Below are positions 15,001 to 51,573 of a DNA stretch of 64,000 bases, piece after piece (within the stretch, counting starts at the first letter, position 1; each line of letters opens with the position of its first letter). A program made the position numbers and the translations under genes. Location: the NCBI RefSeq assembly GCF_032444005.1, contig NC_091289.1:10354001-10418000 (forward strand), read 5' to 3'. The DNA is from Ranitomeya imitator. Lineage: Eukaryota. A model generated the notes under the pieces. It worked only from the letters and a program-made list of their open reading frames with translations, had not been told where the DNA came from and searched no databases.

Positions 15001-15032
15001 ACGTCACTAACTTTAAATGTGTTTTTTTTCAG

Positions 15033-17923: not shown

Positions 17924-18060
17924 CTATTTACATCCGGAGCGGAGGAAGTCGATGGCCTGCTTGGCCCAGGCGGCCTTCCAGGGCTTCACCAGACTGTTCA
18001 TATTGACCAGCAGCTTGTTATTCCGGGTGTCCTCGGGTCCGGCTATTAGGTAGTCTACAC
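17924..18060 (-). CDS. Netrin-4-like exon 10 (NTR/C345C C-terminus, stop TAG)
   Basis: 137 nt, GVDYLIAGPEDTRNNKLLVNMNSLVKPWKAAWAKQAIDFLRSGCK*; cf. NTN4 GLEYLVAGHEDIRTGKLIVNMKSFVQHWK. Confidence 0.92.
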
Positions 18061-19031
18061 CTGAAAGACAGCACACAATGTATCAGCTTTATTCCACATC
18101 TTTACTTACAATGAATGGAAATGTAACATCTGCACAGACATCAAACTTCTCACAGCGGATGTTTTGTCACATTTGTATCCTGTCTACGCAGTTTGAGTGT
18201 GTGGATTCTAATGGTCGTCTCCTTTTGGTGAGTGCAGGACATCTGGACCGAGGATGAAGATTAGTTTTTTTATTGCATACATAAAGTAAATATTAAGATA
18301 TTATCGGAGTTCAAAATAAACTCAGACTTTCAGTAAATGTCCCTTGTACATAGCAGCCGCTGTTAGTGAATCCGTTTCAGGCCAGGGTCACACAAGCGGA
18401 TTTTCTTTGATCTGAGAAAACCGGATGCAAGTCGTACGTGCTGCAATTTTTTATTTTTTCCCAGAGAAAAAAAAAACCTGACGTGTACGGCCACATAGGC
18501 TAACATCAGCATTAGTCCAAGGGCAATGCAAAGTATTGTCGGATCGCACTCAGACCAAAAATCTGGTCACCTGCACGGACCCTTACACAGATCTGATCTT
18601 TAGTCATTCACAGGAATATCCCCATTCAGCGGCAGCAAGCAGAGATCTTAGAGAGGTAAGGAGGAAAAGAACGATTGATGCTGCAAACGAAAAGTGAAGC
18701 CGTGACTATAAATCGCAACCCATCAGATTCCATAGCTAATTTTGCAAGTTTGTATGTGAAAATTGCAGACGCAATCAGGTTGGTTACTATAAGAAAATCA
18801 CTTTTTTTTCCACATTTCGATAACGTGGAGGATATTTATCAAAAGTAAATTGCAGAATCTGCGTCGGACAATCCCTTCTGTTCGATGTCCTCCCCAAATA
18901 AAGGATAATTACAGAGATAATCCCCAGTGATCAGATGAGATCTGGGAAGGAACCAGCAGCAAGTGATTCATTTGCCTGCAGCGCCTCCACAGGGAAAATG
19001 AGGTATTACATGTGCCCATTAAACTAATTAA

Positions 19032-19842
19032 AGGGAACCTGTCACCCCGTTTTTTGAGATTGAGCTATAAATACTGTTAAATAGGGCCTGCGCTGTGTGT
19101 TCCTATAGTGTATGTAGTGTACCCCGATTCCCCATGTATGCTGAGAAATAACTTACCAAAGTCGCCGTTTTCGCCTGTCAATCAGGCTGGTCAGGTCGGG
19201 AGGGCGTGGTGACATCGGTGGTTCTTCCTCAGCTTTACGTTGGTGGCGTAGTGGCGTAGTGGTGAAGACACAGCGCGCGATCTGCGCTGTAATCCCTTGC
19301 ATCGGTGGGGGCGGCCATCTTCCTGGGGCCGCGCGTGCGCAGATCGAGTGCTCAGCTGCACGGGGCTTCAGGAAAATGGCCGCGGGATGCCGCGCGTGCG
19401 CATTAGAGATCGCGGCGGCCATTTTCCCAAAGCCGAGATGCAAACTCGGCTTTGGGAAAATGGCCGCCGCGATCTCTAATGCGCACGCGCGGCATCCCGC
19501 GGCCATTTTCCTGAAGCCCAGTGCAGCAGAGCACTCGATCTGCGCACGCGCGGCCCCAGGAAGATGGCCGCCCCCACCGATGCAAGGGATTACAGCGCAG
19601 ATCGCGCGCTGTGTCTTCACCACTACGCCACCAACGTAAAGCTGAGGAAGAACCACCGATGTCACCACGCCCTCCCGACCTGACCAGCCTGATTGACAGG
19701 CGAAAACGGCGACTTTGGTAAGTTATTTCTCAGCATACATGGGGAATCGGGGTACACTACATACACTATAGGAACACACAGCGCAGGCCCTATTTAACAG
19801 TATTTATAGCTCAATCTCAAAAAACGGGGTGACAGGTTCCCT
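19032..19842. mobile_element. T2/Kolobok-type fold-back MITE (811 bp, near-perfect palindrome)
   Basis: TTAA TSD both sides, agggaacctgtcacc termini; arms mirror to a central loop at ~19438-19444. Confidence 0.92.
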
Positions 19843-20459
19843 TTAAGGTACAGACATTTTGGGTCCTCCAATAGATGAAGTCCGTAGAATCTCCAGCTTC
19901 ATCTCTCTTCTAACAAACTAACAATTCAATGTTCTCCAAAGTGTATTAGTAGATATCCAGGAAAATCCCCAACTATCTGGCACCAGGATAAACCATCAGA
20001 AGTAGGCGTACTATGCCCAGGGTCTGCCACCTTCAGTTCTCCGAGAGCTGACCTGTCCGAAAACTGCACATGAACAGCCCGATTCATTCCGTTCAACTTG
20101 TGGAATGAGACTTTAGGACAAGAGACAGAAGCAACTGATCTTGTGTCCCCAAGAGGCCAGACCTGTCCCGAACAGAAAGGGCACTGTGTCCATCAGCGAT
20201 TTCTGGGAGAGACTGAAACGCTGCCATTTACTGCAAGGCTGCCAGTCCTGACCCTTTAAGTACTGAACGACCCTGTGCCCACCAGATTCTACATCCTTTT
20301 CAGCTTTGGATGAGCTCATAGGAAACTCTGTGTTCTGTCAGGTCTTTATTCTGGAATAAAGCTCCAAATCTTCTGCATGCACAGAATTATATATGTAATC
20401 GTTTTGCCTACACCCACTACTAGAGTAGGTACACTCATTATGGGATCAGTATACTTCTG

Positions 20460-21917
20460 TCTGCAGGGAGCTCCCCCTAGTGGTGACTGCAGACAGGATC
20501 TTATCATGTATCTCTGTATACAGGGAGCTCCCCCTAGTGGTGACTGCAGACAGGATCTTATCATATATCTCTGTATACAGGGAGCTCCCCCTAGTGGTGA
20601 CTGCAGACAGGATCTTATCATGTATCTCTGTATACAGGGAGCTCCCCCTAGTGGTGACTTATGTGACAGGATGTTATGTATCTATATACACGGAGCTCCC
20701 CCTAGTGGTGCCTGCAGACAGGATCTTATCATATATCTCTGTATACAGGGAGCTCCCCCTAGTGGTGACTGCAGACAGGATCTTATCATGTATCTCTGTA
20801 TACAGGGAGCTCCCCCTAGTGGTGACTGCAGACAGGATCTTATCATGTATCTCTGTATACAGGGAGCTCCCCCTAGTGGTGACTTATGTGACAGGATGTT
20901 ATGTATCTCTATATACACGGAGCTCCCCCTAGTGGTGCCTGCAGACAGGATCTTATCATGTATCTCTGTATACAGGGAGCTCCCCCTAGTGGTGACTGCA
21001 GACAGGATCTTATCATATATCTCTGTATACAGGGAGCTCCCCCTAGTGGTGACTGCAGACAGGATCTTATCATGTATCTCTGTATACAGGGAGCTCCCCC
21101 TAGTGGTGACTTATGTGACAGGATGTTATGTATCTCTATATACAGGGAGCTCCCCCTAGTGGTGACATGACAGGATGTTATCATGTATCTCTATATACAG
21201 GGAGCTCCCCCTAGTGGTGGCTGCAGACAGGATCTTATCATGTATCTCCCTATACATGGAGCTCCCCCTAAAGGTGGCTGCAGACAGGATCTTATGTATC
21301 TCTGTATACAGGGAGCTCCCCCTAGTGGTGGATGCAGACAGGATCCTATCATGTATCTCTGTTCACAAGGAGCTCCCCCTAGTGGTGACTGCAGACAGGA
21401 TCTTATCATGTATCTCTGTATACAGGGAGCTCCCCCTAGTGGTGGCTGCAGACAGGATCTTATCATGTATCTCTGTATACAGGGAGCTCCCCCTAGTGGT
21501 GACTGCAGACAGGATCTTATCATGTATCTCTGTATACAGGGAGCTCCCCCTAGTGGTGACTGCAGACAGGATCTTATGTATCTCTGTATACAGGGAGCTC
21601 CCCCTAGTGGAGGCTGCAGACAGAATCTTATCATGTGTCTCTGTATACAGGGAGCTCCCCCTAGTGGTGACTGCAGACAGGGTCTTATCATGTATCTCTG
21701 TATACAGGGAGCTCCCCCTAGTGGTGGCTGCAGACAGGATCTTATCATGTATCTCTGTATACAGGGAGCTCCCCCTAGTGGTGACTGCAGACAGGATCTT
21801 ATCATGTATCTCTGTATACAGGGAGCTCCCCCTAGTGGTGGCTTCAGACACGATCTTATCATGTATCTCTGTACACAAGGAGCTCCCCCTAGTGGTAGCT
21901 GCCGACAGGATGTGATG
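20460..21917. repeat. 57-bp minisatellite, left block (~25 units), CTCF-like motif on minus strand
   Basis: Unit cagggagctccccctagtggtgactgcagacaggatcttatcatgtatctctgtata. Confidence 0.96.
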
Positions 21918-21919
21918 TA

Positions 21920-23537
21920 CAGTACAGACCAAAAGTTTGGACACACCTAATTTAAAGATTTTTCTGTATTTTCATGACTATGAAAATTGTACATTCACAC
22001 TGAAGGCATCAAAACTATGAATTAACATATATGGAATTATATACTTAACAAAAAAGTGTGAAACAACTGAAATTATGTCTTATATTCTAGGTTCTTCAAA
22101 GTAGCCACTTTTTGCTTTGATGACTGCTTTGCACACTCTTGGCATTCTCTTGATGAGCTTCAGGAGGTAGTCACCGGGAATGGTCTTCCAACAATCTTGA
22201 AGGAGTTCCCAGAGATGCTTAGCACTTGTTGGCCCTTTTGCCTTCACTCTGCGGTCCAGCTCACCCCAAACCATCTCGATTGGGTTCAGGTCTGGTGACT
22301 GTGGGGGGCCAGGTCATCTGGGCGTAGCATCCCATCACTCTCCTTCTTGGTCAAATAGCCCTTACACAGCCTGGAGGTGTGTTTGGGGTCATTGTTCTGT
22401 TGAAAAATAAATGATGGTCCAACTAAACGCAAACCGGATGGAATAGCATGCCGCTGCAAAATGCTGTGGTAGCCATGCTGGTTCAGTATGTCTTCAATTT
22501 TTAATAAATCCCCAACAGTGTCACCAGCAAAGCCCCCCCACACCATCACACCTCCTCCTCCATGCTTCACGGTGGGAACCAGGCATGTAGAGTCCATCCG
22601 TTCACCTTTTCTGCATCGCACAAAGACACGGTGGTTGGAACCAAAGATCTCAAATTTGGACTCATCAGACCAAAGCACAGATTTCCACTGGTCTAATGTC
22701 CATTCCTTGTGTTCTTTAGCCCAAACAAGTCTCTTCTGCTTGTTGCCCGTCCTTAGCAGTGGTTTCCTAGCAGCTATTTTACCATGAAGGCTGCTGCACA
22801 AAGTCTCCTCTTAACAGTTGTTGTAGAGATGTGTCTGCTGCTAGAACTCTGTGTGGCATAGACCTGGTCTCTAATCTGAGCTGCTGTTAACCTGCGATTT
22901 CTGAGGCTGGTGACTCGGATAAACTTATCCTCAGAAGCAGAGGTGACTCTTGGTCTTCCTTTCCTGGGGCAATCCTCATGTGAGCCAGTTTCTTTGTAGC
23001 GCTTGATGGTTTTTGCTACTGCACTTGGGGACACTTTCAAAGTTTTCCCAATTTTCCAGACTGACTGACCTTAATTTCTTAAAGTAATGATGGCCACTCA
23101 TTTTTCTTTACTTAGCTGTTGTTTTCTTGCCATAATACAAATTCTAAATTTCTAATATTCAGTAGGACTATCAGCTGTGTATCCACCAGACTTCTGCACA
23201 ACACAACTGATGGTCCCAACCCCATTTATAGGGCAAGAAATCCCACTTATTAAACCTGACAGGGCACACCTGTGAAGTGAAAACCATTTCTGGTGACTAT
23301 CTCTTGAAGCTCATGAAGAGAATGCCAAGAGTGGGCAAAGCAGTCATCAAAGCAAAAGGAAGAACCTAGAATATAAAACATTTTCAGTTTTTTCACACTT
23401 TTTTGTTAAGTATATAATTCCACATGTGTTAATTCATAGTTTTGATGCCTTCAGTGTGAATTTACAATTTTCATAGTCATGAAAATACAGAAAAATCTTT
23501 AAATGAGAAGGTGTGTCCAAACTTTTGGTCTGTACTG
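21920..23537 (-). mobile_element. Tc1-like transposon (1618 bp), transposase pseudogene, inserted in the 57-bp array
   Basis: TA TSD; ~260-bp TIRs starting cagtacagaccaaaagtttggacacacc; frameshifted fragments with WSDESKF, QQNNDPKH (D to N) and VWGELDRRV. Confidence 0.95.
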
Positions 23538-25100
23538 TATCTCTGTATACAGAGAGCTCCCCCTAGTGGTGGCTGCAGACAGGATCTTATCATGTATCTC
23601 TGTATACAGGGAGCTCCCCCTAGTGGTGACTGCAGACAGGATCTTATCATGTATCTCTGTATACAGGGAGCTCCCCCTAGTGGTGGCTGCAGACAAGATC
23701 TTATGCATCTCTGTATACAGGGAGCTCCCCCTAGTGGTGACTGCAGACAGGATCTTATCATGTATCTCTGTATACAGGGAGCTCCCCCTAGTGGTGGCTG
23801 CAGACAGGATCTTATCATGCATCTCTGTGTACAGGGAGCTCCCCCTAGTGGTGGCTGCAGACAGGATCTTATCATGTATCTCTGTATACAGGGAGCTCCC
23901 CCTAGTGGTGGCTGCAGACAAGATCTTATCATGCATCTCTGTATACAGGGAGCTCCCCCTAGTGGTGTCTGCAGACAAGATCTTATCATGTATCTCTGTA
24001 TACAGGGAGCTCCCCCTAGTGGTGTCTGCAGACAGGATCTTATCATGTATCTCTGTATACAGGGAGCTCCCCCTAGTGGTGACTGCAGACAGGATCTTAT
24101 GTATCTCTGTATACAGGGAGCGCCCCCCTAGTGGTGTATGCAGACAGGATCTTATCATGTATCTCTGTATACAGGGAGCTCCCCCTAGTGGTGGCTGCAG
24201 ACAGGATCTTATCATGTATCTCTGTATACAGGGAGCCCCCCCCTAGTGGTGACTGCAGACAGGATCTTATCATGTATCTCTTTATACAGGGAGCTCCCCC
24301 TAGTGGTGACTGCAGACAGGATCTTATCATGTATCTCTGTATACAGGGAGCTCCCCCTAGTGTCTGCAGACAAGATCTTATCATGTATCTCTGTATACAG
24401 GGAGCTCCCCCTAGTGGTGTCTGCAGACAGGATCTTATCATGTATCTCTGTATACAGGGAGCTCCCCCTAGTGGTGTCTGCAGACAAGATCTTATCATGT
24501 ATCTCTGTATACAGGGAGCTCCCCCTAGTGGTGGCTGCAGACAGGATCTTATCACGTATCTCTGTATACAGGGAGCTCCCCCTAGTGGTGTCTGCAGACA
24601 GGATCTTATCATGTATCTCTGTATACAGGGAGCTCCCCCTAGTGGTGGCTGCAGACAGGATCTTATCATGTATCTCTGTATACAGGGAGCTCCCCCTAGT
24701 GGTGGCTGCAGACAGGATCTTATCATGTATCTCTGTATACAGGGAGCTCCCCCTAGTGGTGGCTGCAGACAGGATCTTATCATGTATCTCTGTATACAGG
24801 GAGCTCCCCCTAGTGGTGGCTGCAGACAGGATCTTATCACGTATCTCTGTATACAGGGAGCTCCCCCTAGTGGTGTCTGCAGACAGGATCTTATCATGTA
24901 TCTCTGTATACAGGGAGCTCCCCCTAGTGGTGGCTGCAGACAGGATCTTATCATGTATCTCTGTATACAGGGAGCTCCCCCTAGTGGTGGCTGCAGACAG
25001 GATCTAGTCATGTATCTGTATAAAGAGAGCTCCCCTAGTTGTGGCTGTATAGAATATTATCATGCCTCTTTTTATACAAGGAGCTCCCCCTAGTGGTGGA
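23538..25100. repeat. 57-bp minisatellite, right block (~27 units), CTCF-like motif on minus strand
   Basis: Same unit resumes in register after the TA duplication. Confidence 0.96.
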
Positions 25101-25155
25101 TGCAGGATTCCAGATTTTATAATTTTCATTGCTGTTTCTAATATTTTGATGCTAC

Positions 25156-25326
25156 CTGGGTTAAGGATGGGGCACGTGCAGCCACGATTGGTCCATGATT
25201 CTGGATAGATGCTCCGGTTTTTCCGACCAATTTTCACTTTCCCTGATTTGAGGACTTTTCTCACTTTCACCACCACTTCTGCATGAGTGCCTTTATCATG
25301 TGCCGACAAAATTCTTGCTTTTATGA
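25156..25326 (-). CDS. Netrin-4-like exon 9 (NTR domain)
   Basis: 171 nt, VIKARILSAHDKGTHAEVVVKVRKVLKSGKVKIGRKNRSIYPESWTNRGCTCPILNP; AG/GT flanks, phase 1-1. Confidence 0.95.
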
Positions 25327-25737: not shown

Positions 25738-25806
25738 CGTACGCATATTTCATCTGGCAGAAATCCGTCATGCTCCCCAGCATCCGCTCCTTGCACACAC
25801 ACTTCT
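25738..25806 (-). CDS. Netrin-4-like exon 8
   Basis: 69 nt, EKCVCKERMLGSMTDFCQMKYAY; cf. NTN4 GKCECKEQTLGNAKAFCGMKYSY; G|gtaagt donor. Confidence 0.92.
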
Positions 25807-26220: not shown

Positions 26221-26354
26221 CTGGATGTCGCAGCGCGGAAAAGCCCTGTTCACTCGTCCACTTCCAGTCATCTTCACTGTCATTGGTCGGCAGGTCTATG
26301 ATGTCAGGAATCCGTCCACCAATAGGAATGTTTAAATAATGTTCATTGTCACTG
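26221..26354 (-). CDS. Netrin-4-like exon 7 (linker)
   Basis: 134 nt, SDNEHYLNIPIGGRIPDIIDLPTNDSEDDWKWTSEQGFSALRHP; cf. NTN4 WEWEDAQGFSALLHS; phases 2/1 fit neighbours; not in ORF track. Confidence 0.88.
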
Positions 26355-26434
26355 CTGCAAAACGATCGGTGACATCATCAGCGGAATCGGCAATATTGTT
26401 ATATTGTCAAATTATACAAAAAACAACAAGATAC

Positions 26435-26648
26435 CTGTTGCGACATTCCCCCGTGTCTGGGTCACAGTCTCTCGCACAGTCACATGGGCGGCAGCCATTG
26501 TCTCCAAATCCCCAGTATCCCGTCAAGCAGTGATCGCAGTATGGACCGGCCACACCGGGTTTGCAGTAACAGAAACCAGTTTTGGGGTTACACTTCCAAC
26601 TTTTGTTCAGCGTTTCATTTACAGAGCCGATAACATTACAGGGACATT
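26435..26648 (-). CDS. Netrin-4-like exon 6 (LE3)
   Basis: 214 nt, CPCNVIGS...[43 protein letters not shown]. Confidence 0.95.
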
Positions 26649-26689: not shown

Positions 26690-28530
26690 AAACAGAGCAG
26701 TATTATAGTAGTTATATTCTTGTACATAGGGGCAGTATTATAGTAGTTATATTCTTGTACATAGGGGCAGTATTATAGTAGTTACATTCTTGTACATAGG
26801 AGCAGTATTATAGTAGTTATATTCTTGTACATAGGGGCAGTATTATAGTAGTTATATTCTTGTACATAGGGGCAGTATTATAGTAGTTATATTCTTGTAC
26901 ATAGGGGCAGTATTATAGTAGTTATATTCTTGTACATAGGAGCAGTATTATAGTAGTTATATTCTTGTACATAGGGGCAGTATTATAGTAGTTATATTCT
27001 TGTACATAGGGGCAGTATTATAGTAGTTATATTCTTGTACATAGGGGCAGTATTATAGTAGTTATATTCTTGTACATAGGGGCAGTATTATAGTAGTTAT
27101 ATTCTTGTACATAGGGGCAGTATTATAGTAGTTATATTCTTGTACATAGGGGCAGTATTATAGTAGTTATATTCTTGTACATAGGGGCAGTATTATAGTA
27201 GTTATATTCTTGTACATAGAGGCAGTATTATAGTAGTTATATTCCTGTATATAGGGGGCAGTATTATAGTAGTTATATTCCTGTATATAGGAGCAGTATT
27301 ATAGTAGTTATATTCTTGTACATAGGAGCAGTATTATAGGAGTTATATTCTTGTACATAGGAGCAGTATTATAGCAGTTATATTCTTGTACATAGGAGCA
27401 GTATTATAGCAGTTATATTCTTGTACATAGGGGCAGTATTATAGTAGTTATATTCTTGTACATAGGAGCAGTATTATAGTAGTTATATTCTTGTACATAG
27501 TAGCAGTATTATAGTAGTTATATTCCTGTATATAGGGGGCAGTATTATAGTAGTTATATTCCTGTATATAGGAGCAGTATTATAGTAGTTATATTCTTGT
27601 ACATAGGAGCAGTATTATAGGAGTTATATTCTTGTACATAGGAGCAGTATTATAGCAGTTATATTCTTGTACATAGGGGCAGTATTATAGTAGTTATATT
27701 CTTGTACATAGGAGCAGTATTATAGTAGTTATATTCTTGTACATAGTAGCAGTATTATAGTAGTTATATTCCTGTATATAGGGGGCAGTATTATAGTAGT
27801 TATATTCCTGTATATAGGAGCAGTATTATAGTAGTTATATTCTTGTACATAGGAGCAGTATTATAGGAGTTATATTCTTGTACATAGGAGCAGTATTATA
27901 GCAGTTATATTCTTGTACATAGGGGCAGTATTATAGTAGTTATATTCTTGTACATAGTAGCAGTATTATAGTAGTTATATTCCTGTATATAGGGGGCAGT
28001 ATTATAGTAGTTATATTCCTGTATATAGGAGCAGTATTATAGTAGTTATATTCTTGTACATAGGAGCAGTATTATAGGAGTTATATTCTTGTACATAGGA
28101 GCAGTATTATAGCAGTTATATTCTTGTACATAGGGGCAGTATTATAGTAGTTATATTCTTGTACATAGGAGCAGTATTATAGTAGTTATATTCTTGTACA
28201 TAGTAGCAGTATTATAGTAGTTATATTCCTGTATATAGGGGGCAGTATTATAGTAGTTATATTCCTGTATATAGGAGCAGTATTATAGTAGTTATATTCT
28301 TGTACATAGGAGCAGTATTATAGGAGTTATATTCTTGTACATAGGAGCAGTATTATAGCAGTTATATTCTTGTACATAGGGGCAGTATTATAGTAGTTAT
28401 ATTCTTGTACATAGGAGCAGTATTATAGTAGTTATATTCTTGTACATAGTAGCAGTATTATAGTAGTTATATTCCTGTATATAGGAGCAGTATTATAGTA
28501 GTTATATTCCTGTATATAGGAGCGCTATTA
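26690..28530. repeat. 35-bp AT-rich minisatellite (~52 units)
   Basis: Unit ggcagtattatagtagttatattcttgtacatagg. Confidence 0.96.
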
Positions 28531-29132
28531 CAGTAATTATATAATTTTACAACAGGTTGCATTCCACTGCACAATAACTACAGGGGAGCTAGATTTTAAG
28601 CTGCGTCCCTTTAACTGAACCCTGGCATCAGGTTGGTTGAGCAGAATTCCGCTATTTAAATAGAACGGGCTTCTCCTCGCCCGCTCACAGCTGTGCTTTG
28701 CACACCGGATTATGGGACTAGAAAAAAAAAAGAGCCAAGATATAATTGAATGAGCACTGCTAATGCCCCAGATGTATCACAGAAGGAGACAGAGGCTTAA
28801 CCGAACAATGGACCGGCATTACGGCCCCCGTGAAGAGTAATGCCCGGCTCTCAGTGAAAATCCCAGCTCCAAATGAATCATATCACACTATATCAAAACC
28901 CAGGAATCCGGTGTTATGTTGTAGCTGAAGGGCAGGTGTGTGTCGGGCGGACGGCCGCCTTTTATCCCCCTTTCTTTTGTGTCTGATACGCTGGGTACAT
29001 GGCATCTAAATTGGCAGTTTTGTGCATTTTTATGGACTATTTTCTTTCTTTTTTTTAAAAAAAAGCCCAAGATGTTGAGACAAGTTGCTTAGTAATGCAT
29101 GAAGGCGCACGTTCATCAAGCTTGTGTCTTAA

Positions 29133-29779
29133 AGGGAACCTGTCACCCCAAAAATCGCGGGTGAGGTAAGCCCACCGGCATCAGGGGCTTATCTGCAGCA
29201 TTCTGTAATTCTGTAGATAAGCCCCCGATGTTACCTGAAAAAGGATAAAAAGACGTTATATTATACTCACCCAGGGGCGGTCCCACGGCTGGTCCGGTCG
29301 GATGGGGGTCTCTGGTCCGCTGTGGCGCCTCCTATCTTCTTTCCATGACGTCCTCTTCTGATCTTCAGCCACGGCTCCGGCGCAGGCGTACTTTGCTCTG
29401 CCCTGTTGAGGGCAGACAAAGTACTGCAGTGCGCAGGCGCCGGAAAGGTCAGAGGCCCGGCGCCTGCGCACTGCAGTACTTTGTCTGCCCTCAACAGGGC
29501 AGAGCAAAGTACGCCTGCGCCGGAGCCGTGGCTGAAGATCAGAAGAGGACGTCTTGTAATGAAGATGGGAGGCGCTGCAGCGGACCGGAGACCCCCATCC
29601 GACCGGTTCAGCAGCGGGACCGCCCCTGGGTGAGTATAATATAACGTCTTTTTCTCCTTTTTCAGGTAACATCGGGGGCTTATCTACAGCATTCCAGAAT
29701 GCATTACAGAATGCTGTAGATAAGCCCCTGATGCCGGTGGGCTTACCTCACCCGCGATTTTCGGGGTGACAGGTTCCCT
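29133..29779. mobile_element. T2/Kolobok-type fold-back MITE (647 bp)
   Basis: TTAA TSD; same agggaacctgtcaccc termini as 19032-19842 but different interior; palindromic arms. Confidence 0.9.
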
Positions 29780-29929: not shown

Positions 29930-30118
29930 CTTTGCACACCAGGGGGGAGCTGATGGGCTCAGTGGGGTCCCGGTAATATCCCGCCCTGCATCTCTGGCAG
30001 CGGTGCCCTTCAGTGTTGTGCTGACAGTTTTCACAAACTCCTCCGCTTTTCTTTCCAGAGGACACCCAGATGCCAGGATCGAAGTGACAGCTGACGGCGT
30101 GATTGTGACAACGACAAC
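29930..30118 (-). CDS. Netrin-4-like exon 5 (LE2)
   Basis: 189 nt, CRCHNHAVSCHFDPGIWVSSGKKSGGVCENCQHNTEGHRCQRCRAGYYRDPTEPISSPLVCK; G|gtaagt donor. Confidence 0.95.
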
Positions 30119-31032: not shown

Positions 31033-31159
31033 GTTTGCACTCGTTGGGGGCTCCGGTTTTCCCATCTCCAGGCCTCCATGGGACATCATTGTACATTGGG
31101 GCGCACTTTTCACAGTGATCCCCTGCGGTGTTATGTTGGCACACACATTTCCCATGGAC
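31033..31159 (-). CDS. Netrin-4-like exon 4 (LE1)
   Basis: 127 nt, [42 protein letters not shown]; AG/GT flanks; frame not shown in ORF track. Confidence 0.94.
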
Positions 31160-31946
31160 CTGAAGAGATAAAATACAAGTTACTCTTCATTGTATTCATC
31201 ACATGAGCTGTGTATCTAATCTGATCATGCGGGATAGTGTCTGCAGCGTTTAGCCCCAACATGAGAAGCGTTCAGCACTACAACCCCCATCATCACATGT
31301 TACATTGCATGTAATGTGGCAATGACTCGGTGCCGGTCGTCCTCTGATGATGGAGATCTGGCGGCTATGGGCGCACAGAATCTGGGTCAGGCCTTAATAT
31401 GATCGTCCCCAACCCCTCATTGTTCCTTTGTATCACATTATTCTGTTGTTTGTAATCTGGGGGGCACAGCGGCTCCATGTGCAGAGGCAGCGCCCCCCGG
31501 CTGGCCTGCTCGGCAGCTCATGTCACTGTCCCGGATGGTTTTTGGCACAGGACCCAGGCAGACTTTTTTTCTCCTCCATCCAGCTGGTCTTTGAATTGCC
31601 GACCCAGCAGCAGAGCTGCACCGTGCCTGGAGGTCACCAAGCCTGGCACGGCCTAGATCAGATAGTTTGGAAACCGCTGGGGATTATCAGGGTGAAGGCA
31701 CAAGATGTTTGGACAGGAGATAACTACTGGAAACGGAGGAGGGTTATAGAAGGAATGTGCTAAATCCACTAAGAAATGTCTGTGCGCAAAAACAAGAGTC
31801 ACCTCGGGTGACCTGGAGCCACCAGCCTGGAGCTGCTGCTGGACGTGACCCCCTGCAGGGAACCAAGAGGAAAAGAGACAGCGAGGGCATCTGCAGAAAA
31901 TCAGGAGGGGCTCTGCAGGATCAGGGTGCAAATATATCAGAGGATG

Positions 31947-36075: not shown

Positions 36076-36342
36076 AGCAGCCTCTGCTCCCGCCATGCTC
36101 CCCGCCTGCTCACACGCCTCCGCATGTCCATTGCAGAAACAGCTTCCACGTACGATCAGATCATAAATGGCGTAGTAAGCGAATCTCTGGGGCTTCTCCT
36201 GTAATCCGCGCACAGCCTGGCATGGACAGTCCTGTCTCTTTAAGAGCAGAAGTCTCAGGTTAGTGATCTTCAGCAGCTCCTGTGCCTGAGGACTGTACGG
36301 ATCCTCAATTCTATTAGCCGGATTTAAGGCTCGAAATATCAC
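36076..36342 (-). CDS. Netrin-4-like exon 3 (end of LN domain, start of LE1)
   Basis: 267 nt, VIFRALNPANRIEDPYSPQAQELLKITNLR...YYAIYDLIVRGSCFCNGHAEACEQAGSMAGAEAA; GCT|gtgagt donor. Confidence 0.95.
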
Positions 36343-36919: not shown

Positions 36920-38449
36920 CAATAAAACTTCCACACTCCTTATCTATGAACTGTTCCAATATTCACGGCCACAACTGTTTCTCCCTCTCCCTCTGATCGT
37001 TCGGCTTCCCGTCACTCGTCTTATCTATTGCATTATTCCTGTGTCCCGTTGTGTATAAATATGGGATTCTTAACATTTTCTGTTATCCTGAGCCCGATGA
37101 ACGGACTTGAGGAGTCTCCAAAGCTGCAATTTGTTACCGTCTTTTCAGTTAGCCAATAAAAAGAGGTGTATCGCAATATTGTAGTAAATGTTCAGGACTC
37201 ATGCTCCAGTCACATCCAGAGCTGCAGTCCCAGTTCTGCTTTATGTTGTATCTTGCAGAATGCCGTCCTGTAATCTCACAGCTGTTCACTGTTCAGCTCT
37301 TTGCTGGATTGCATTGATGTCATGTCTGTAGTGTATTATAGGAGCCAGATGAGGTGACATCCGCCATGTGGCATCCTGAAGAATTATGAATGCAGCTCTT
37401 GGGCTAGATTCACACGTTGTGGCCAAGATGCGTATTTTGCCTCAACATGACAAAAATAAACTGTTTTTTTCCTGCAATTTTCAGCAAAAATATTGTGGTG
37501 AGAAAACTGCCCTGCAGCCGCAACGTGAGAGCACGGCCTTAATGAGACTTTCTTAAAAACCAGACTAAGGCAGTGCCATATATTGTGTAATTACAGGAAC
37601 TCGGCTTAGGCAGTGATCTCTGCTTGCTGGCATTCAGCAGAATTTTGAATGCAGCTCTGGATGTGAGTGCAGACATCCTCCAGCGGAAAGGCAGTGCTAT
37701 CTATTATGTACCCGGGATAATAAGAATAATTGTGGCTTATTCATGGCAGCACATCGCACGGGCACTGGCGCTCTGTTGTGACTGCACACGTAGCGTGATC
37801 TGCGTCACAGTATTCATGCCCGGTCAACTGTCATGAACATTTCTAATAACCGCCCTCATCCCCAGCAGCGAGAGTCCGATGTCCCAGCCCCCCACTGTTT
37901 AGGAGATGCTCACCCCGCTGGGCCACAAAAATGCTCTATTCTATTGCAGCAGTCGGGAAGAAATGGAATTTCAGCTCCGCTGACACAAGTGTGTCTACCC
38001 CTCTACTGACGGGCCGTGCCTGGGACCCCCGTGGTTCTGTTATGAGGCAGGGGCTCCTCTATGCAATTAACCCTTTGTTTAATGAGAAGTTCCTTTATAG
38101 AGTCAAAAAGGTTAAAATTGCTCAAATAGCAATGGGCTGAATGTAACTTAAACATATTAACACTAATTACCATAAATATTGGCACAAGCTATGAGCCCCC
38201 TATTACAGGTGCTGCCATCCTGCATTCATACCATTGCCCAACATAACAGAAGCATAAGACCTCACCACTGGGTATATTTCATTTTGATCATTTTAAAATG
38301 ACCCAAGCGTTAGGGTTTATTAACTTTATAACATATTTATTACTGATGAAACTTGATTTTACCGTTACACAGTTCAAAATCCCTTCCATAAACCAAGGCG
38401 AATAACACAATTCAAGCCACCAATACAAGATATATATATATACACTGCA

Positions 38450-39720
38450 GCCACCACTAGGGGGCGCTCCCTGTATACAGAGATACATGATAAGATCCTG
38501 TCTGCAGCCACCACTAGGGGAGCTCCCTGTATACAGAGATACATGATAAGGTTCTGTCTGCTGCCACCACTAGGGGGAGCTCCCTGTATACAGAGATACA
38601 TGATAAGATCCTGTCTGCAGTCACCACTAGGGGGAGCTCCCTGTATACAGAGATACATGATAAGAACCTGTCTGCAGTCACCACTAGGGGGAGCTCCCTG
38701 TATAGAGAGATACATGATAAGATCCTGTCTGCAGTCACCACTAGGGGGAGCTCCCTGTATACTGAGATACATGGTAAGATCCTGTCTGCAGTCACCACTA
38801 GGGGGAGCTCCCTGTATACAGAGATGCATGATAAGATCCTGTCTGCAGTCACCACTAGGGGAGCTCCCTGTATACAGAGATACATGATAAGAACCTGTCT
38901 GCAGTCACCACTAGGGGGAGCTCCCTGTATACAGAGATACATGATAAGGTTCTGTCTGCTGCCACCACTAGAGGGGCTCTCTGTATACAGAGATACATGA
39001 TAAGATCCTGTCTGCAGCCACCACTAGGGGGAGGTCCCTGTATACAGAGATACATGATAAGATTCTGTCTGCAGCCACCACTAGGGGGAGCTCCCTGTAT
39101 ACAGAGATACATGATAAGATCCTGTCTGCAGCCACCACTAGGGGGAGGTCCCTGTATACAGAGATACATGATAAGATTCTGTCTGCAGCCACCACTAGGG
39201 GGAGCTCCCTGTATACAGAGATACATGATAAGATCCTGTCTGCAGCCACCACTAGGGGGAGCTCCCTGTATACAGAGATACATGATAAGATCCTGTCTGC
39301 AGTCACCACTAGGGGGAGCTCCCGGTATACAAAGATACATGATAAAATCCTGTCTGCAGCCACCACTAGGGGGAGCTCCCTGTATACAGAGATACATGAT
39401 AAGATCCTGTCTGCAGTCACCACTAGGGGGAGCTCCCTGTATACAGAGATACATGATAAGGTTCTGTCTGCTGCCACCACTAGCGTGAGCTCCCTGCATA
39501 CAGAGATACATGATAAGATCCTGTCTGCAGTCACCACTAGGGGGAGCTCCCTGTATATAGAGATACATGATAAGATCCTGTCTGCAGCCACCACTAGGGG
39601 GAGCTCCCTGTATACAGAGATACATGATAAGATCCTGTCTGCAGCCATCACTTGGGGGAGCTCCCTGTATACAGAGATACATGATAAGATCCTGTCTGCA
39701 GTCACCACTAGGGGGAGCTC
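38450..39720. repeat. 57-bp minisatellite, inverted orientation (~22 units), CTCF-like motif on plus strand
   Basis: Unit ccactagggggagctccctgtatacagagatacatgataagatcctgtctgcagtca, reverse complement of the 20-25 kb arrays. Confidence 0.96.
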
Positions 39721-40525: not shown

Positions 40526-41315
40526 GAGCTCCCTGTATACAGAGATACATGATAAGATCCTGTCTGCAGCCACCACTAGGGGATCTCCCTGTATACAAAG
40601 ATACATGATAAGATCCTGTCTGCAGTCACCACTAGGGGAATCTCCCTGTATACAGAGATACATGATAAGGTTCTGTCTGCAGTCACCACTAGGGGGAGCT
40701 CCCTGTACACAGAGATACATGATAAGATCCTGTCTGCAGCCACCACTAGGGGGAGCTCACTGTATACAGAGATACATGATAAGATCCTGTCTGCAGTCAC
40801 CACTAGGGGAGCTCCCTGTATACAGAGATACATGATAAGATCCTGTCTGCAGTCACCACTAGGGGGAGCTCCCTGTATACAGAGATACATGATAAGATCC
40901 TGTCTGCAGTCACCACTAGGGGAGCTCCCTGTATACAGAGATACATGATAAGATCCTGTCTGCAGTCACCACTAGGGGGAGCTCCCTGTATACAGAGATA
41001 CATGATAAGATCCTGTCTGCAGTCACCACTAGGGGGAGCTCCCTGTATACAGAGATACATGATAAGATCTTGTCTGCATCCACCACTAGGGGGAGCTCCC
41101 TGTATACAGAGATACATGATAAGGTTCTGTCTGCAGCCACCACTAGGGGGAGCTCCCTGTATACAGAGATACATGGTAAGGTTCTGTCTGCAGCCACCAC
41201 TAGGGGGAGCTCCATATATACAGAGATACATGATAAGGTTCTGTCTGCAGTCACCACTAGGGGGAGCTCCATATATACAGAGATACATGATAAGATCCTG
41301 TCTGCAGTCACCACT
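40526..41315. repeat. 57-bp minisatellite continuation (~14 units)
   Basis: Array resumes in register after the LTR. Confidence 0.95.
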
Positions 41316-41475: not shown

Positions 41476-44008
41476 CAGGTGCTTTTCACAAAATTAGAAT
41501 ATCATCAAAAAGTTAATTTATTTCAGTTCTTCAATACAAAAAGTGAAACTCATATAGAGTCATTACACACAGAGTGATCTATTTCACGTGTTTATTTCTG
41601 TTAATGTTGATGATTATGGCTTACAGCCAATGAAAACCCAAAAGTCATTATCTCAGTAAATTAGAATACTTTATAACACCAGCTTGAAAAAAAAAAAAAG
41701 ATTTTAAAATCCAAAATGTTGTCCTACTGAAATGTATGTTCAGTAAATGCTCTCAACACTTGATCGGGCTCCTTTTCCATCAATTACTGCATCAATGCGG
41801 TGTGGCATGGAGGCGATCAGCCTGTGGCACTGCTGAGGGGTTATGGAAGCCCAGGTTGCTTTGATAGCAGCCTTTAGCTCATCTGCATTGTTGGGTCTGG
41901 TGTCTCATCTTCCTCTTGACAATACTCCATAGATTCTCTATGGGGTTAAGGTCAGGAGAGTTTACTGCCAATAAAGCACAGTGATACTGTTGTTCTTATG
42001 CGGCACCTCGTAAGGGCAGTGGGGTACTCGGATCCGGGCCCTTCTGTTCTCAATGGGGATGTCACGGTGGCGGACCCGGTCCGTGGCCCTCGGGAGGCCC
42101 GTTGATGTAGTGGGGGAAAGGTCTTTAAAGGGATAATGTTCGTGACGCCACCTGTGGTATTCGGTCAGGGTGACCGACGCTGCTTAGGGGTCCGCTGGAG
42201 TGATGTTATGGCAGCTGGATGGTATACCTTCCCACAGGTGAAGTATATCCCCAGGGCTTCCCAGAGTGTAGCTGGTGGATGGTGGATGATGTAAAGCGCA
42301 GTGAATAACGAGGACACAAGGTTGCAGTCTCTTTACCTTTACTGAAGGCTTCATCATCCACAGTCCAGGGAAGGGACCACAGGGCAGGCAGAGTCCGGCC
42401 GGTCTGAATGCAAATCCAGAGTCCCCTTATCCAGGTGGAATTCAGTAGCCTTCCTCTAGCGCCTGGGCGTTGTAGTACCTCTCTGCTGAGCAACTCGGTA
42501 AGGTCCTCACAACTATTGTAGATGTTAAGTCTCTTCTCTCTGTCCCCCTGATGGATAGGACAAACCCGTATGACTGGTGGCCTGAGGCTTTTTATAGGGA
42601 CCCTAGAGACGCCGCGGCCCCCACAAGTTGCTACCCTGCCTCCTGGGTATATGGTCGGCAGCCAATGTGGAATCAACTGTACTGCCAGTCTCTGAAGTAA
42701 CGGCATAGAGCTCTTTACTCCCTCGGTGTTCTGGCTACCGGCTTCTGCGCCTCAGAAGGAGGCAGCCTGCCTCTAGTTGGTCTCCCACTGATGTTCCTCT
42801 TCTGTTGCTATGACTTCATTGCTCACTCACTGCAACACAATTCCTTTCAATGTCTCTTTCTTGGGATGCTGCCGCATGGGATGCAGGCGCAGCTCCGTGT
42901 ACCTCCCTCTTCCACAGGCCGCAGTCTGGAGCTGGCTGGAACCCACTCCAACTATCTGCTGCCAAACTCGGTCAGGACTCACTGACTATCTCCTACTCCC
43001 TCCAGTCAGCTTCTGTCTAACTTCCTAACCAACCCACCAGTTTTACGTAAGTGTGAGGAGTGCCCTAATAGATAGAAGCATGGCTCCCCCTGGCGGACTG
43101 GAGTGTGAAGTGTGTTTGGTGGTTGTGATACCTGGACAGAAGATCTCCTTCATTGCCTTCAGATGTAACATCACTCCCCCTGGTGGAAGAACAACATTAC
43201 TGCAACGACCAGGACTCTGGGGCGCTGCACTTACACCAGGTATTGGTAATTTTGGCAGTTTGGAGAGGGGCAAAGTCCTGCTGGAGAATTACATTTTCAT
43301 CTCCAAAAAGCATGCTTCCCTCTGCCGACAAGAAGTGCTCTACAATGTCCTGGTAGACGGCTGCGCTGACTTTTGACTCTTGATAAGACACAGTGGACCT
43401 ACACCAGCAGATGACATGGCCCCCAAACCATCACTGATGGTGGAGACTTCACACTAGACCTCCAGCAGCTTGGATTGTGGCCTCCACTCTTCCTCCAGAC
43501 TCTGGGACCTTGATTTCCAAATGAAATGCAAAATTTACTTTCATCTGACAACAACACCTTGGACCACTGACAACAGTCCGGTTCTTTTTCTCCTTGGCCC
43601 AGGTAAGACGCTTCTGGCGTTGTCTATTGGTCATGAGTGGCCGGACACAAGGAATGCGACACTTGTAGCCCATGTCCTGGAGACGTCTGTGTGTGCCACA
43701 TTGATGCAAAAGGAGCCCGACCAAGTATTGAGTGCATTTACTGAACATACATTTCAGTAGGACAACGTTTCGAATTTTAAAATCATTTTCAAGCTGGTGT
43801 TATAAATTATTCTAATTTACTGAGATAATGACTTTTGGGTTTTCATTGGCTGTAAGCCATAATCATCAACATTAACAGAAATAAACACGTGAAATAGATC
43901 ACTCTGTGTGTAATTGACTCTATATAATATAGGAGTTTTACTTTTTGTATTGAAGAACTGAAATAAATTCACTTTTTGATGATATTCTAATTTTGTGAGA
44001 AGCTCCTG
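41476..44008 (-). mobile_element. Internally deleted Tc1-like element with nested LTR
   Basis: TA TSD; ~310-bp inverted ends caggtgcttttcacaaaattagaatatc; fragments MGYKCRIPCVRPLMTNRQRQKRLTWAKEK and LQQDFAP. Confidence 0.9.
41999..43229. mobile_element. Solo LTR (1231 bp, Gypsy-like by TSD length) nested in Tc1
   Basis: TG...CA ends, imperfect terminal IR (tgcggcacc / ggggcgctgca), 4-bp TSD CTTA at 41995-41998 and 43230-43233. Confidence 0.85.
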
Positions 44009-44689: not shown

Positions 44690-45550
44690 ACGTCATGTTC
44701 CTGTACACCCGCGAGTCAGTGTCATCATCCTGTACCCCGAGTATCAGTGTCATTATCCTGTACCCCGAGTGTCAGCGTCATTATCCTGTACCCCGAGTGT
44801 CAGTGTCATTATCCTGTACCCCGAGTGTCAGTGTCATTATCCTGTACCCGCGAGTCAGTGTCATCATCCTGTACCCCGAGTATCAGCGTCATTATCCTGT
44901 ACCCCGAGTGTCAGCATCATTATCCTGTACCCCGAGTGTCAGCATCATTATCCTGTACCCCGAGTGTCAGTGTCATTATCCTGTACCCCGAGTGTCAGCG
45001 TCATTATCCCGTACCCCAAGTGTCAGCGTCATTATCCCGTACCCCGAGTGTCAGTGTCATTATCCTGTACCCCGAGTGTCAGCGTCATTATCCTGTACCC
45101 CAAGTGTCAGCGTCATTATCCTGTACCCCCAGTGTCAGTGTCATTATCCTGTACCCCCAGTGTCAGTGTCATTATCCTGCACCCTGAGTGTCAGTGTCAT
45201 TATCGTGAACCCCAAGTTTCAGTGTCATTATCCTGTACCCCGAGTGTCAGCGTCATTATCGTGAACCCCGAGTGTCAGCGTCATTATCGTGAACCCCAAG
45301 TTTCAGTGTCATTATCCTGTATCCCGAGTGTCAGTGTCATTATCCTGTACCCCCAGTGTCAGTGTCATTATCCTGTACCCCAAGTTTCAGTGTCATTATC
45401 GTGAACCCCAAGTTTCAGTGTCATTATCCTGTACCCCCAGTGTCAGTGTCATTATCCTGTACCCCAAGTTTCAGTGTCATTATCCTGTACCCCGAGTGTC
45501 AGCGTCATTATCGTGAACCCCGAGTGTCAGCGTCATTATCGTGAACCCCT
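44690..45550. repeat. 28-bp minisatellite (~30 units) ending ~95 nt from the exon-2 donor
   Basis: Unit agtgtcagtgtcattatcctgtaccccg. Confidence 0.95.
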
Positions 45551-45645
45551 AGGCAGTGATCTCTGGTCGACAACATTATAAAATGTGACATGATAAATTC
45601 TTCTGGTTGTTTTTGGTGCATTCTCACATTGGGGCCATCGCTCAC

Positions 45646-46178
45646 CTCTCCTCTTGTGCAGGGCCAGGCGTCTGAGTACCGTGAAGTGCACAATGACCCC
45701 TCCTCATTCAGGTCATCCTGGAGGCTGAAAGTCGCCGTACAGTTAATAGCAAAATACTTGTAAGGTCTCCAAGTTTTTCCATAGTCAAACGATCTCTCCA
45801 GAACCATCGCTGCGGGCCGTGGGGACCTGAAGACCATGATGACGTGCGTCAAATAAAACTCAGTCTCAAAGTCCAACCTGATCTCCTCCTTGAGGACACC
45901 CTGTGCCGACTGCCACCAGGTGCCCGGACTGGAGAAGACGTCGTCTGTCATGTGAGAGGGAAGGTGCGAGTTCTCCGGCTGGTTGATGCTACATTTCGTG
46001 CACTGGCTTTCGCTGCAGGAGATGGCTGTCCGCTGGTACCGAACCTCAGGGTAGGAGCAGTACAGTTCACTGACATTCTGGCCGCAGGTGGTGAGGGTGA
46101 CCGGAGTCCGGCCGATAGCAAGGTTCCCAACCGGGGGGTTGCACGAATGTCCATCACACCGGAGATGGTGGAACTTGG
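45646..46178 (-). CDS. Netrin-4-like exon 2 (laminin N-terminal LN domain)
   Basis: 533 nt, RCDGHSCNPPVGNLAIGR...TTCGQNVSELYC...TWWQSAQG...FRSPRPAAMVLERSFDYGKTWRPYKYFA...PCTRGE; ctctag acceptor, GAG|gtgag donor. Confidence 0.96.
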
Positions 46179-49100: not shown

Positions 49101-49504
49101 TGGGCCCTTTCCAGTCCAGTAACTCATAATGCAGAATTCCACCGGCTCTGGGAGTGAAACTGAGCCCCCTCATCTCTTGGGGCCCAGTGTGGCCGCACAG
49201 GTTGCATCAATGGTATGTCCACTTGGGTGCTATTATAAAATAGCTGTAGTGGGCCTTTAAAATGGTTTAAACACAAAAAATAAATAATTAACAAAATGTA
49301 ATTGCCATTGATTGCAGTTACATTACGTTAATCAATCCCTGATATGAGCAGAGCCAGAAATATTGGAAACAATCCATCATCATCCAAGCTCTCAATGTTC
49401 CGTCCAAACATGTGCGAACTGGAAATGCCAATTCCCTATAATCAGTAATCTTTTGCTGAAAACGGCATACAGCTCTGAATTATAAGATAAATTACTTATC
49501 ATGT

Positions 49505-50798
49505 ACTGATCCTGAGTGACATCCTGTATTATACCCCAGAGCTGCACTCACTATTCTGCTGGTGCAGTCACTGTGTACATACATTACATTACTGATCCTG
49601 AGTTACATCCTGTATTATCCTCCAGAGCTGCACTCACTATTCTGCTGGTGCAGTCACTGTGTACATACATTACTGATCCTGAGTTACATCCTGTATTATA
49701 CCCCAGAGCTGCCCTCACTATTCTGCTGGTGCAGTCACTGTGTACATACATTACTGATCCTGAGTTACATCCTGTATTATACCCCAGAGCTGCACTCACT
49801 ATTCTGCTGGTGCAGTCACTGTGTACATACATTACATTACTGATCCTGAGTTACATCCTGTATTATACCCCAGAGCTGCACTCACTATTCTGCTGGTGTA
49901 ATCAATGTGTACATACATTACATTACTGATCCTGAGTTACATCCTGTATAATACTCCAGAGCTGCACTCACTATTCTGCTGGTGCAGTCACTGTGTACAT
50001 ACATTACCAATCAAAGAAGAAAACAGAGAAGGCAGCACTCACCGATCCATCACGAGAGGTAACTTCCACGGGTCAGGAGGGCGCGAAACGGCCGTTGTCA
50101 GGCTTGCCGCACTTCATGTTTTTGTACCCCCGGCTGTGATGTCTTTTACTCAATAAAAGTTACCTCTCGTGATGGATCGGTGAGTGCTGCCTTCTCTGTT
50201 TTCTTCTTTGATTGGACTTGGATTTGTTTCGTGGCTGGAGCACCTAAGATCCGGTGGTCAAGACTCCCATCACAGGTGAGCAGGCGCACGTTGTTTCCTT
50301 TGAGCGGTAGTGCTGTCAGCTTTTTTTCTTCAAGATTGAGTGTACATACATTACATTACTGATCCTGAGTTACATCCTGTATTATACTCCAGAGCTGCAC
50401 TCACTATTCTGCTGGTGCAGTCACTGTATACATACATTACATTACTGATCCTGAGTTACATCCTGTATTATACTCCAGAGCTGCACTCACTATTCTGCTG
50501 GTGCAGTCACTGTGTACATACATTACATTACTGATCCTGAGTTACCTCCTGTATTATACCCCAGAGCTGCACTCACTATTCTGCTGGTGCAGTCACTGTG
50601 TACATACATTACATTACAGATCCTGAGTTACATCCTGTATTATACCCCAGAGCTGCACTCACTATTCTGCTGGTGCAGTCACGGTGTACGTACATTACAT
50701 TACTGATCCTGAGTTACATCCTGTATTATACTCCAGAGCTGCACTCACTATTCTGCTGGAGGAGTCATGAGTACATACATTACATTCCTGATCCTGAG
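49505..50798 (+). repeat. Second 86-bp satellite block (~11 units) in netrin-4-like intron 1, interrupted at 50008-50339
   Basis: Same monomer as 1-9380. Confidence 0.95.
50008..50339. mobile_element. Probable Penelope-like terminal-repeat fragment with 5' inversion
   Basis: 15-bp TSD gtgtacatacattac; perfect 59-bp inverted arms (50007-50065 / 50157-50215); GAAACGGCCGTTGTC; AATAAA at 50152. Confidence 0.6.
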
Positions 50799-51512
50799 AC
50801 TTTAAGCTTTCACAGATTCCAGAATGATAGATTTACTTGGCAATGAGGAAAGAGTGGTGAGTGTGACAGCCCTTTATTCTTGGGGGGTGTCCCAGGTATT
50901 TTTTGGGCTGATGCCTCTTCATCATCATTACTCAGGAGGATGCAGCTGATCTGCAGTGAGACAACACCACACAGTCCACCATCTGATACATTATGGATAC
51001 ACAGAGTATCTGGGGGCTGTGAGATCTGAGCTGTGGAAAGTTCTATATTATTCCGATTATGTGTCACATTTTCTTGGCTCTTAGAACCAACTGACATCAG
51101 AGAGCAAAAGAAAATCTTGAACGAGAGGAAACTACTGAAGAAGCTGGAATATAAATATACTGACAGTTTCCAACCTGTCAATCACAGAGGCGGCTATAAA
51201 AAGCAGTCAGTGAGCTGAAACAAACACATTACTGTTTCTTTGCCCAAGAGGTTCTGCAGCAGCTGGATCTTTTTTTTTTTAAATACTTTAGGGAGACCTG
51301 ACTATTGACCCCATTACCACCAGTCTATGAATGTAACCATCCCCTATCTACATGCAACAACCCACAACACTCCAAGATGGTAGAAGAAATAAAGTGACAT
51401 CTCCTCTATAATCACAGATCATCTAATGGACTACAACTCCCAGCTGCACTCAGTGTACGGTGAGCGTTGGATCCCCAGCCCCCACACACCTGCCTGTGCC
51501 CACCATCCTTAC

Positions 51513-51573
51513 CTGGGTCTGTGTGCACTGAGACAATCCATTCCAGGAACACAATGATGGTGATTCCCTGCAT
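51513..51573 (-). CDS. Netrin-4-like exon 1 (putative signal peptide MQGITIIVFLEWIVSVHTDP)
   Basis: atcATG context, hydrophobic stretch, CCAG|gtaagg phase-1 donor matching exon 2; the ten exons total 1902 nt = 633 aa. Confidence 0.75.

Follow-up and report, generated by a model that had tools for sequence, protein, structure and literature searches.

A netrin gene between CHCHD4 and UROC1

The window analysed here, a stretch of 64,000 nucleotides (nt) from the Ranitomeya imitator genome (NCBI RefSeq assembly GCF_032444005.1, contig NC_091289.1, positions 10,354,001 to 10,418,000 of the forward strand), carries on its minus strand, from 51573 to 17924, a gene of the netrin-4 family that stands tail-to-tail with CHCHD4 and head-to-head with UROC1. 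Taking our explanation of the locus as a whole, we consider it very probable that this gene is the intact orthologue, in a hyloid frog, of netrin-4-like (NTN4L), the sister gene of netrin-4 (NTN4). NTN4L is already annotated and named in animals from sharks to marsupials and is not a new gene.

The ten exons of the gene join into 1,902 nt, encoding 633 amino acids (aa) followed by a single terminal stop, and all nine introns are of the GT-AG type (the AG and GT sites listed around each open segment gave one consistent model). There are no N letters in the window. Rebuilding the model from the window letters reproduced the ten exons and the 633-aa frame without internal stops described in an earlier note on this DNA, in which the end coordinates and the sizes of exons 4, 5, 6, 8, 9 and 10 were exact. 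The exons, in order of transcription, are as follows.

Exon 1, coding part: 51513-51573, minus strand, 61 nt; start codon at 51573, hydrophobic signal-like N-terminus, donor CAG/GTAAG
Exon 2: 45646-46178, minus strand, 533 nt; most of the LN domain, ending on the E198 codon (equivalent to E195 of mouse Net4)
Exon 3: 36076-36342, minus strand, 267 nt; end of the LN domain with R202 (equivalent to mouse R199) and start of LE1 with a shortened loop b
Exon 4: 31033-31159, minus strand, 127 nt; remainder of LE1
Exon 5: 29930-30118, minus strand, 189 nt; LE2
Exon 6: 26435-26648, minus strand, 214 nt; LE3
Exon 7: 26221-26354, minus strand, 134 nt; linker between LE3 and NTR
Exon 8: 25738-25806, minus strand, 69 nt; start of the NTR module
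Exon 9: 25156-25326, minus strand, 171 nt; NTR module
Exon 10, coding part: 17924-18060, minus strand, 137 nt including the stop; end of the NTR module, with the 3' untranslated region (UTR) further downstream

A transcript from a related frog follows this model closely. The protein encoded by this transcript, a 3,199-nt Logan contig from RNA run SRR5149395, shares 89% identity with the model, and the spliced coding sequence from the window matches the contig in one uninterrupted alignment (nt 5-1902, 87.3% identity, 6 gapped positions). Mapped back to the window, the contig falls into ten coding blocks bounded by the modelled exon edges, matching all nine junctions, plus an eleventh short block in the 3'UTR that marks a conserved trace at 17494-17552. 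The first block extends into the 5'UTR (51819-51513, aligned at 66%), and the 5'UTR of exon 1 probably reaches approximately 51819. Between the two frogs, the ratio of nonsynonymous to synonymous substitution rates (dN/dS) was 0.09 (NG86) or 0.125 (YN00), and it lay at 0.05-0.10 in each of the LN, LE, linker and NTR parts; a value of about 0.1 indicates purifying selection.

Database, family and structure searches were run exon by exon, and the joined 633-aa model served in the alignments, the trees, the dN/dS estimates and a BLAST comparison with retrieved proteins. Among the pieces of open reading frame (ORF) that carry the exons, Pfam recovered Laminin_N in exons 2 and 3 (1.6e-36 and 1.6e-10), EGF_laminin in three pieces (exons 4, 5 and 6) and NTR in exon 9 (3.1e-9), confirming the earlier assignment of an LN domain, three LE repeats and an NTR module; the putative signal peptide was read by eye from the hydrophobic N-terminus. 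Against solved structures in the PDB, the exon 2 piece matched netrin-4 best (2.6e-45), followed by laminin beta1 (1.7e-25), netrin-G1 (1.8e-12) and netrin-1 (approximately 3e-11), such that the LN domain is nearer to netrin-4 and laminin beta than to netrin-1 or netrin-G. The model aligned end to end with netrin-4 family members, and in an alignment of 40 proteins the 46 columns occupied by cysteine in nearly every sequence of the NTN4 and NTN4L clades were all cysteine in the window protein (46/46).

Comparison with known proteins places the window protein beside, and apart from, two familiar types. Canonical netrin-4 (NTN4, beta-netrin; structures 4WNX and 9AZ3) has the same LN, three LE and NTR organization, the same laminin-beta-like LN domain, the 46 cysteines and the equivalents of E195 and R199, but it shares only 57-59% identity with the window protein, forms a separate clade and occupies a different locus, and eight sites are fixed differently between the two clades. 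Laminin beta chains have a homologous LN-LE head (approximately 38-40% identity to long laminin-beta-like proteins), whereas the window protein has neither the long arm nor the coiled coil and carries an NTR module after its three LE repeats.

Orthology, position and distribution of NTN4L

The best full-length relative in the exon 2 search was X. tropicalis XP_002938270 (XP_002938270.2; now named "netrin-4", earlier "netrin-4-like"), which is 72% identical over the whole model. The netrin-4-like protein was 89% identical to the model in both Rhinoderma darwinii and Bufo bufo, and a partial Dendrobates sequence reached 92%; these were the best values among the matches listed, none of which was identical to the model, and the identity to canonical NTN4 of only about 58% bears out the earlier description of a clearly diverged protein. 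With the X. tropicalis protein as the query, matches fell into two tiers: an upper tier, mostly named "netrin-4-like", from many frogs, salamanders, a caecilian, squamates, turtles, a crocodile, birds, platypus, koala, Dromiciops, lungfish, sturgeon, bichir, sharks and elephant shark; and a lower tier, named "netrin-4", at 53-57% identity and covering the same animal groups and, in addition, placental mammals. The many RefSeq entries of the first kind agree with the suggestion, made from the window sequence, that the gene might already be annotated as netrin-4-like in non-mammals. The annotated NTN4L genes of Bufo bufo, Rhinoderma darwinii, X. tropicalis and chicken show no substantive difference from the window gene: full-length identity is 72-89%, and they share its clade, its ten-exon structure and its position between UROC1 and CHCHD4.

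Phylogenetic analysis separated the two tiers as sister clades. A first maximum-likelihood tree (69 rows, LG+C20+F+G4, quick search), rooted on laminin-beta-like N-terminal parts with Saccoglossus netrin-4 as a second outgroup, recovered a canonical clade (SH-aLRT, the Shimodaira-Hasegawa-like approximate likelihood-ratio test, 97) and a netrin-4-like clade (94), each of which contained chondrichthyans, ray-finned fishes, lungfish, amphibians, sauropsids and mammals. A second tree that included eight teleosts again showed these two clades (canonical 98, netrin-4-like 94). In these trees the window protein joined those of Bufo and Rhinoderma (98-99), within the successive frog, tetrapod and gnathostome groupings of the netrin-4-like clade, and forcing it into the canonical clade was rejected by the approximately unbiased (AU) test (log-likelihood difference 117.8, p-AU 5e-68); the trees and this test together uphold the earlier view that the gene is a netrin-4 paralogue rather than canonical NTN4. 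Both genes are annotated in a single species in X. tropicalis, Discoglossus, Pelodytes, Mixophyes, Ascaphus, Rhinoderma and Dendrobates, and also in Pleurodeles, Ambystoma, Protopterus, Erpetoichthys, Heptranchias, Callorhinchus, tammar wallaby and brushtail possum. The nearest relatives of R. imitator therefore carry a canonical NTN4 separate from their netrin-4-like gene, rather than a single gene lying within the NTN4 orthologues.

The genomic position of the gene supports the same assignment. Two neighbours were identified in the window by domain matches:

CHCHD4 (MIA40), last coding exon: within the ORF 15017-15325, plus strand; CHCH Pfam match and CPC motif
UROC1, early exons: two ORFs, 61168-61449 and 62482-62808, plus strand; Urocanase_N and Urocanase matches

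The last CHCHD4 exon is 67-68% identical to the CHCH gene that flanks the orthologue in elephant shark and electric eel. Elsewhere, UROC1 stands head-to-head with the orthologue in pelican, elephant shark, platypus and Tasmanian devil, and a CHCH gene lies downstream of it in elephant shark, Tasmanian devil and electric eel; elephant shark and Tasmanian devil keep both neighbours, and the UROC1 side was seen for pelican and platypus. Because the UROC1-NTN4L-CHCHD4 arrangement is found in elephant shark and Tasmanian devil, it is at least as old as the jawed vertebrates. The earlier note had listed CHCHD4, TMEM43 and UROC1 as neighbours, of which the first and last stand; TMEM43, placed as a presumed exon 1 at 9351-9575 on the minus strand, could not be confirmed, as this segment had no Pfam match, no atlas match and no match in the eel locus. 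Flanked by CHCHD4 and UROC1, the gene is not positioned near USP44, AMDHD1 or HAL, which we take to be the neighbours of human NTN4. No informative neighbours of canonical NTN4 came to light in the 10-kb flanks of the X. tropicalis, gar and eel loci.

The distribution of NTN4L in mammals contradicts the proposal that the gene is absent from them. Platypus has a netrin-4-like gene next to UROC1, and at least 10 marsupial species have one (the koala cluster comprises koala, Tasmanian devil, brushtail possum, sugar glider, Dromiciops, Gracilinanus, bilby, tammar wallaby, dunnart and wombat), with the Tasmanian devil locus keeping both UROC1 and CHCHD4. No placental mammal occurred in the netrin-4-like tier of any protein-database search, although placentals were abundant in the canonical tier, and NTN4L appears to be missing from placental mammals only. 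In the human genome, UROC1 (3q21) and CHCHD4 (3p25) are no longer neighbours, and the apparent placental loss of NTN4L may have coincided with the break between them.

The sequences of the remaining mammals have features of their own. Among netrin-4-like sequences, the marsupials sit on a long branch (stem 0.29 in the first tree, koala 0.39 in the second; birds and turtles 0.03-0.06), which suggests faster change in marsupials, the sole therian group that still has NTN4L. The 774-aa platypus model contains an insertion of approximately 100 residues that falls precisely on the boundary of exons 2 and 3 and separates the conserved Glu from the conserved Arg; it is unique among the sequences and has the appearance of a retained intron or a misprediction.

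Teleosts have two netrin-4-type genes, both called "netrin-4" in RefSeq. One is canonical NTN4, present in eel, tarpon, arapaima and perch-like fishes, which rules out the idea that teleosts retained the NTN4L-type gene only. The other is fast-evolving (stem 0.86), adjoins a CHCH gene and groups with netrin-4-like (SH-aLRT 94), and its placement with the canonical clade was rejected (p-AU 0.025). Ensembl-derived names of this second gene trace to the zebrafish clone name si:dkey-202e22.2.

Possible function, origin and competing explanations

The known biochemistry of netrin-4 offers one view of what NTN4L might do. The affinity of mouse netrin-4 for the laminin gamma1 LN domain is approximately 2 nM, and the protein dissolves laminin networks; this affinity falls to 66 nM in an E195A/R199A mutant and to approximately 50 nM (25-fold weaker gamma1 binding) upon deletion of loop b (281-KAPGA-285), and binding is abolished when these changes are combined (PMC5141367). 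In our alignment, both clades and the hemichordate keep the Glu/Arg pair (Arg is replaced by Lys in one primate NTN4), and its equivalents in the window protein are E198, encoded by the last codon of exon 2, and R202. Loop b of LE1, by comparison, is five residues shorter and has no KAPGA in all tetrapod netrin-4-like proteins aligned there, the window protein included (Dromiciops is gapped), and shark and bichir netrin-4-like proteins have a longer but unrelated loop b. Because deletion of KAPGA weakens the gamma1 binding of mouse netrin-4 25-fold, NTN4L may be a weaker or differently tuned binder. The KAPGA-like sequence is confined to amniote canonical NTN4 and is absent from the canonical NTN4 of frogs and fishes, so that the lack of it does not specifically point to a loss of laminin binding.

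On these grounds of sequence, we lean somewhat towards NTN4L being a secreted laminin gamma1 binder that competes with laminin polymerisation with an affinity different from that of NTN4: the laminin-beta-like LN-LE1 head of the secreted protein would bind the laminin gamma1 short arm, as in netrin-4, and this binding would compete with laminin polymerisation in basement membranes. It is possible, if less probable, that NTN4L is a working protein whose action lies outside laminin networks, serving instead as a ligand of a cell-surface receptor or, via its LN domain, as a binder of secreted factors such as Wnt. A role of this kind would accord with the shortened, KAPGA-free loop b of tetrapod NTN4L (a loop that accounts for a 25-fold share of affinity in mouse netrin-4), with the reported binding of Wnt ligands by the human NTN4 LN domain (PMC9187238) and with the cell-type-restricted expression of the chicken gene in abneural supporting cells, but it leaves aside the E195/R199 equivalents and the LN-LE cysteine framework, which are invariant across the clade.

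The origin of the gene pair can be bracketed in time. Saccoglossus ntn4 branches below both clades in both trees, and both clades contain chondrichthyans and osteichthyans, so the split occurred after the hemichordates diverged and before the jawed-vertebrate ancestor, in line with the earlier proposal of an ancient vertebrate duplicate. Exon ends fall at the same model positions (approximately 198-200, 287-290, 329, 392, 463-464, 508-511, 531 and 588-589) in canonical NTN4 (gar and eel) and in netrin-4-like genes (elephant shark, Tasmanian devil and electric eel); this bears out the resemblance in exon sizes to NTN4 noticed before and, because intron positions are common to the two genes, indicates that the introns were copied with the gene in a DNA-level duplication. 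On this reading, NTN4 and NTN4L descend from one such duplication that kept all intron positions and took place after the hemichordate divergence and before the split of sharks and bony vertebrates, and NTN4L has since remained between UROC1 and CHCHD4 in every major jawed-vertebrate group sampled, including monotremes and marsupials.

This timing is compatible with the early vertebrate genome duplications. No lamprey or hagfish netrin-4 was identified among the named matches, and the bracket takes in both the first and the second round of whole-genome duplication (1R and 2R). A small-scale duplication, segmental or dispersed, on the vertebrate stem strikes us as an unlikely substitute: the timing bracket and the intron-bearing copy do not separate the two modes, and an amphioxus "Ntn4p" fragment, outside the sampling of the trees, was also found, but the timing coincides with 1R/2R. 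Also against the small-scale mode stand the human gene pairs that flank both loci at 3p25/3q21 and 12q22-23 (FGD5/FGD6, NR2C2/NR2C1, TXNRD3/TXNRD1, CHST13/CHST11 and ALDH1L1/ALDH1L2), an arrangement that would fit a paralogon.

The two loci may have a further feature in common. UROC1, which lies beside NTN4L, and AMDHD1 and HAL, which lie near human NTN4, are all enzymes of histidine breakdown; the UROC1 side of this pattern was confirmed in five species. These observations can be joined into a single account, which we regard as doubtful when all its parts are taken together. In it, NTN4L would add a second regulator of laminin networks with a tuning of its own (conserved gamma1-binding pair, truncated loop b), active in particular tissues of non-placental vertebrates, such as the regenerating avian inner ear; it would have been lost on the placental stem with the UROC1-CHCHD4 chromosome break; and the netrin-4 ancestor would, before duplication, have stood beside HAL, UROC1 and AMDHD1, which were later divided between the copies.

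Two other explanations concern the identity and state of the window gene itself. A decaying or silent relic in R. imitator might be suspected from introns packed with satellite arrays and transposon remnants, and the transcript evidence does not come from R. imitator itself, but the intact frame of 633 codons, canonical splice sites, complete set of 46 cysteines and dN/dS of about 0.1, together with an orthologue that is transcribed and identically spliced in a related frog, make this highly improbable. That the gene is canonical NTN4, relocated in frogs and fast-diverging, can be dismissed despite the NTN4-like domain structure and intron positions and the plain "netrin-4" labels of the X. 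tropicalis and pelican orthologues in RefSeq, given the AU test result, the separate canonical NTN4 of the frogs closest to the window and the UROC1/CHCHD4 position common to elephant shark and Tasmanian devil.

Several points weigh against the identification of the gene as an intact NTN4L orthologue with the history and role outlined above. The trees come from quick searches with SH-aLRT values as their only support, and that of the netrin-4-like clade is 94. The evidence for a separate canonical NTN4 comes from the closest relatives (Rhinoderma and Dendrobates), and the transcript is that of a related frog. The absence from placentals is an absence among database matches, not the outcome of a genome search; whole-genome duplication remains a candidate cause of the NTN4/NTN4L pair; and the suggested laminin-binding mechanism builds on two conserved residues and one loop.

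Earlier records, naming and repeats in the window

NTN4L is an established gene symbol in chicken, where it serves as a marker of the lateral (abneural) supporting cells in the basilar papilla (PMC10656459; reviewed in PMC10933805), and it also occurs in a macrophage expression list (PMC6409778). Netrin-4 figures as one gene in vertebrates both in a paper on netrin evolution (PMC3516229) and in a recent review (PMC10084454). In the literature searched, alternative names included, we found no functional or evolutionary study of NTN4L, in keeping with the earlier remark that the gene is functionally little studied, and no mention of si:dkey-202e22.2. Fourteen "NTN4L" strings in PMC9187238 do not refer to this gene; they are parts of the construct names NTN4LN and NTN4LE.

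The coexistence of the two genes bears on how netrin-4 is studied. Work on netrin-4 in basement-membrane softening, angiogenesis and tumour suppression has been built on placentals, apparently the sole group without the sister gene. Frogs, birds, reptiles, fishes, marsupials and monotremes have a pair of netrin-4-type proteins held under constraint of equal strength (identity between frog and shark is much alike for the two clades, at 60-68%), and netrin-4 knock-out and expression studies in those animals must therefore consider NTN4L. The plain "netrin-4" labels on X. tropicalis and pelican NTN4L and on both teleost genes add a risk of confusion. The history and function of NTN4L are an ordinary gap in knowledge, not a sign of a new kind of gene.

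Naming is also inconsistent within the databases. The NTN4L proteins of X. tropicalis and pelican (the pelican cluster holds 481 sequences) are labelled "netrin-4", like the canonical X. tropicalis gene, and UniRef names many proteins of both clades "Netrin-1".

The window contains tandem repeats of several kinds, many of them in the introns of the netrin gene. An 86-bp satellite fills the first 9 kb (1-9381; 105 copies at 95% match, plus 4.5 copies) and ends within the ORF of the presumed TMEM43 exon, and a degraded array of this unit (15 copies, 73% match) lies in netrin intron 1. Four arrays share one 57-bp unit (14-28 copies each, 90-95% match), the pair in intron 2 being oriented opposite to the pair in intron 9. 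Arrays of shorter units come close to two exons: the 35-bp array ends 47 nt before the exon 6 acceptor, and the 28-bp array ends 97 nt after the exon 2 donor. The arrays within the netrin gene are located as follows.

20456-21911 and 23536-25105: 57-bp unit, intron 9
26695-28542: 35-bp unit, 53 copies, intron 5
31946-33309: 30-bp unit, 46 copies, intron 3
38445-39720 and 40526-41315: 57-bp unit, intron 2
44692-45549: 28-bp unit, 31 copies, intron 2
49504-50798: degraded 86-bp unit, intron 1

Remnants of Tc1/mariner-type transposases (DDE_3 and HTH_Tnp_Tc3_2) occur at 57420-58435 (plus strand) and at 22080-23040, 14583-14894 and 43197-43748 (minus strand): one between the netrin gene and UROC1, two in netrin introns and one just upstream of the last CHCHD4 exon. 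Finally, in the short segments 19153-19721 (intron 9) and 29256-29672 (intron 5) the ORFs of the two strands nearly mirror each other and share peptide motifs, a hint of long inverted repeats or palindromic elements.

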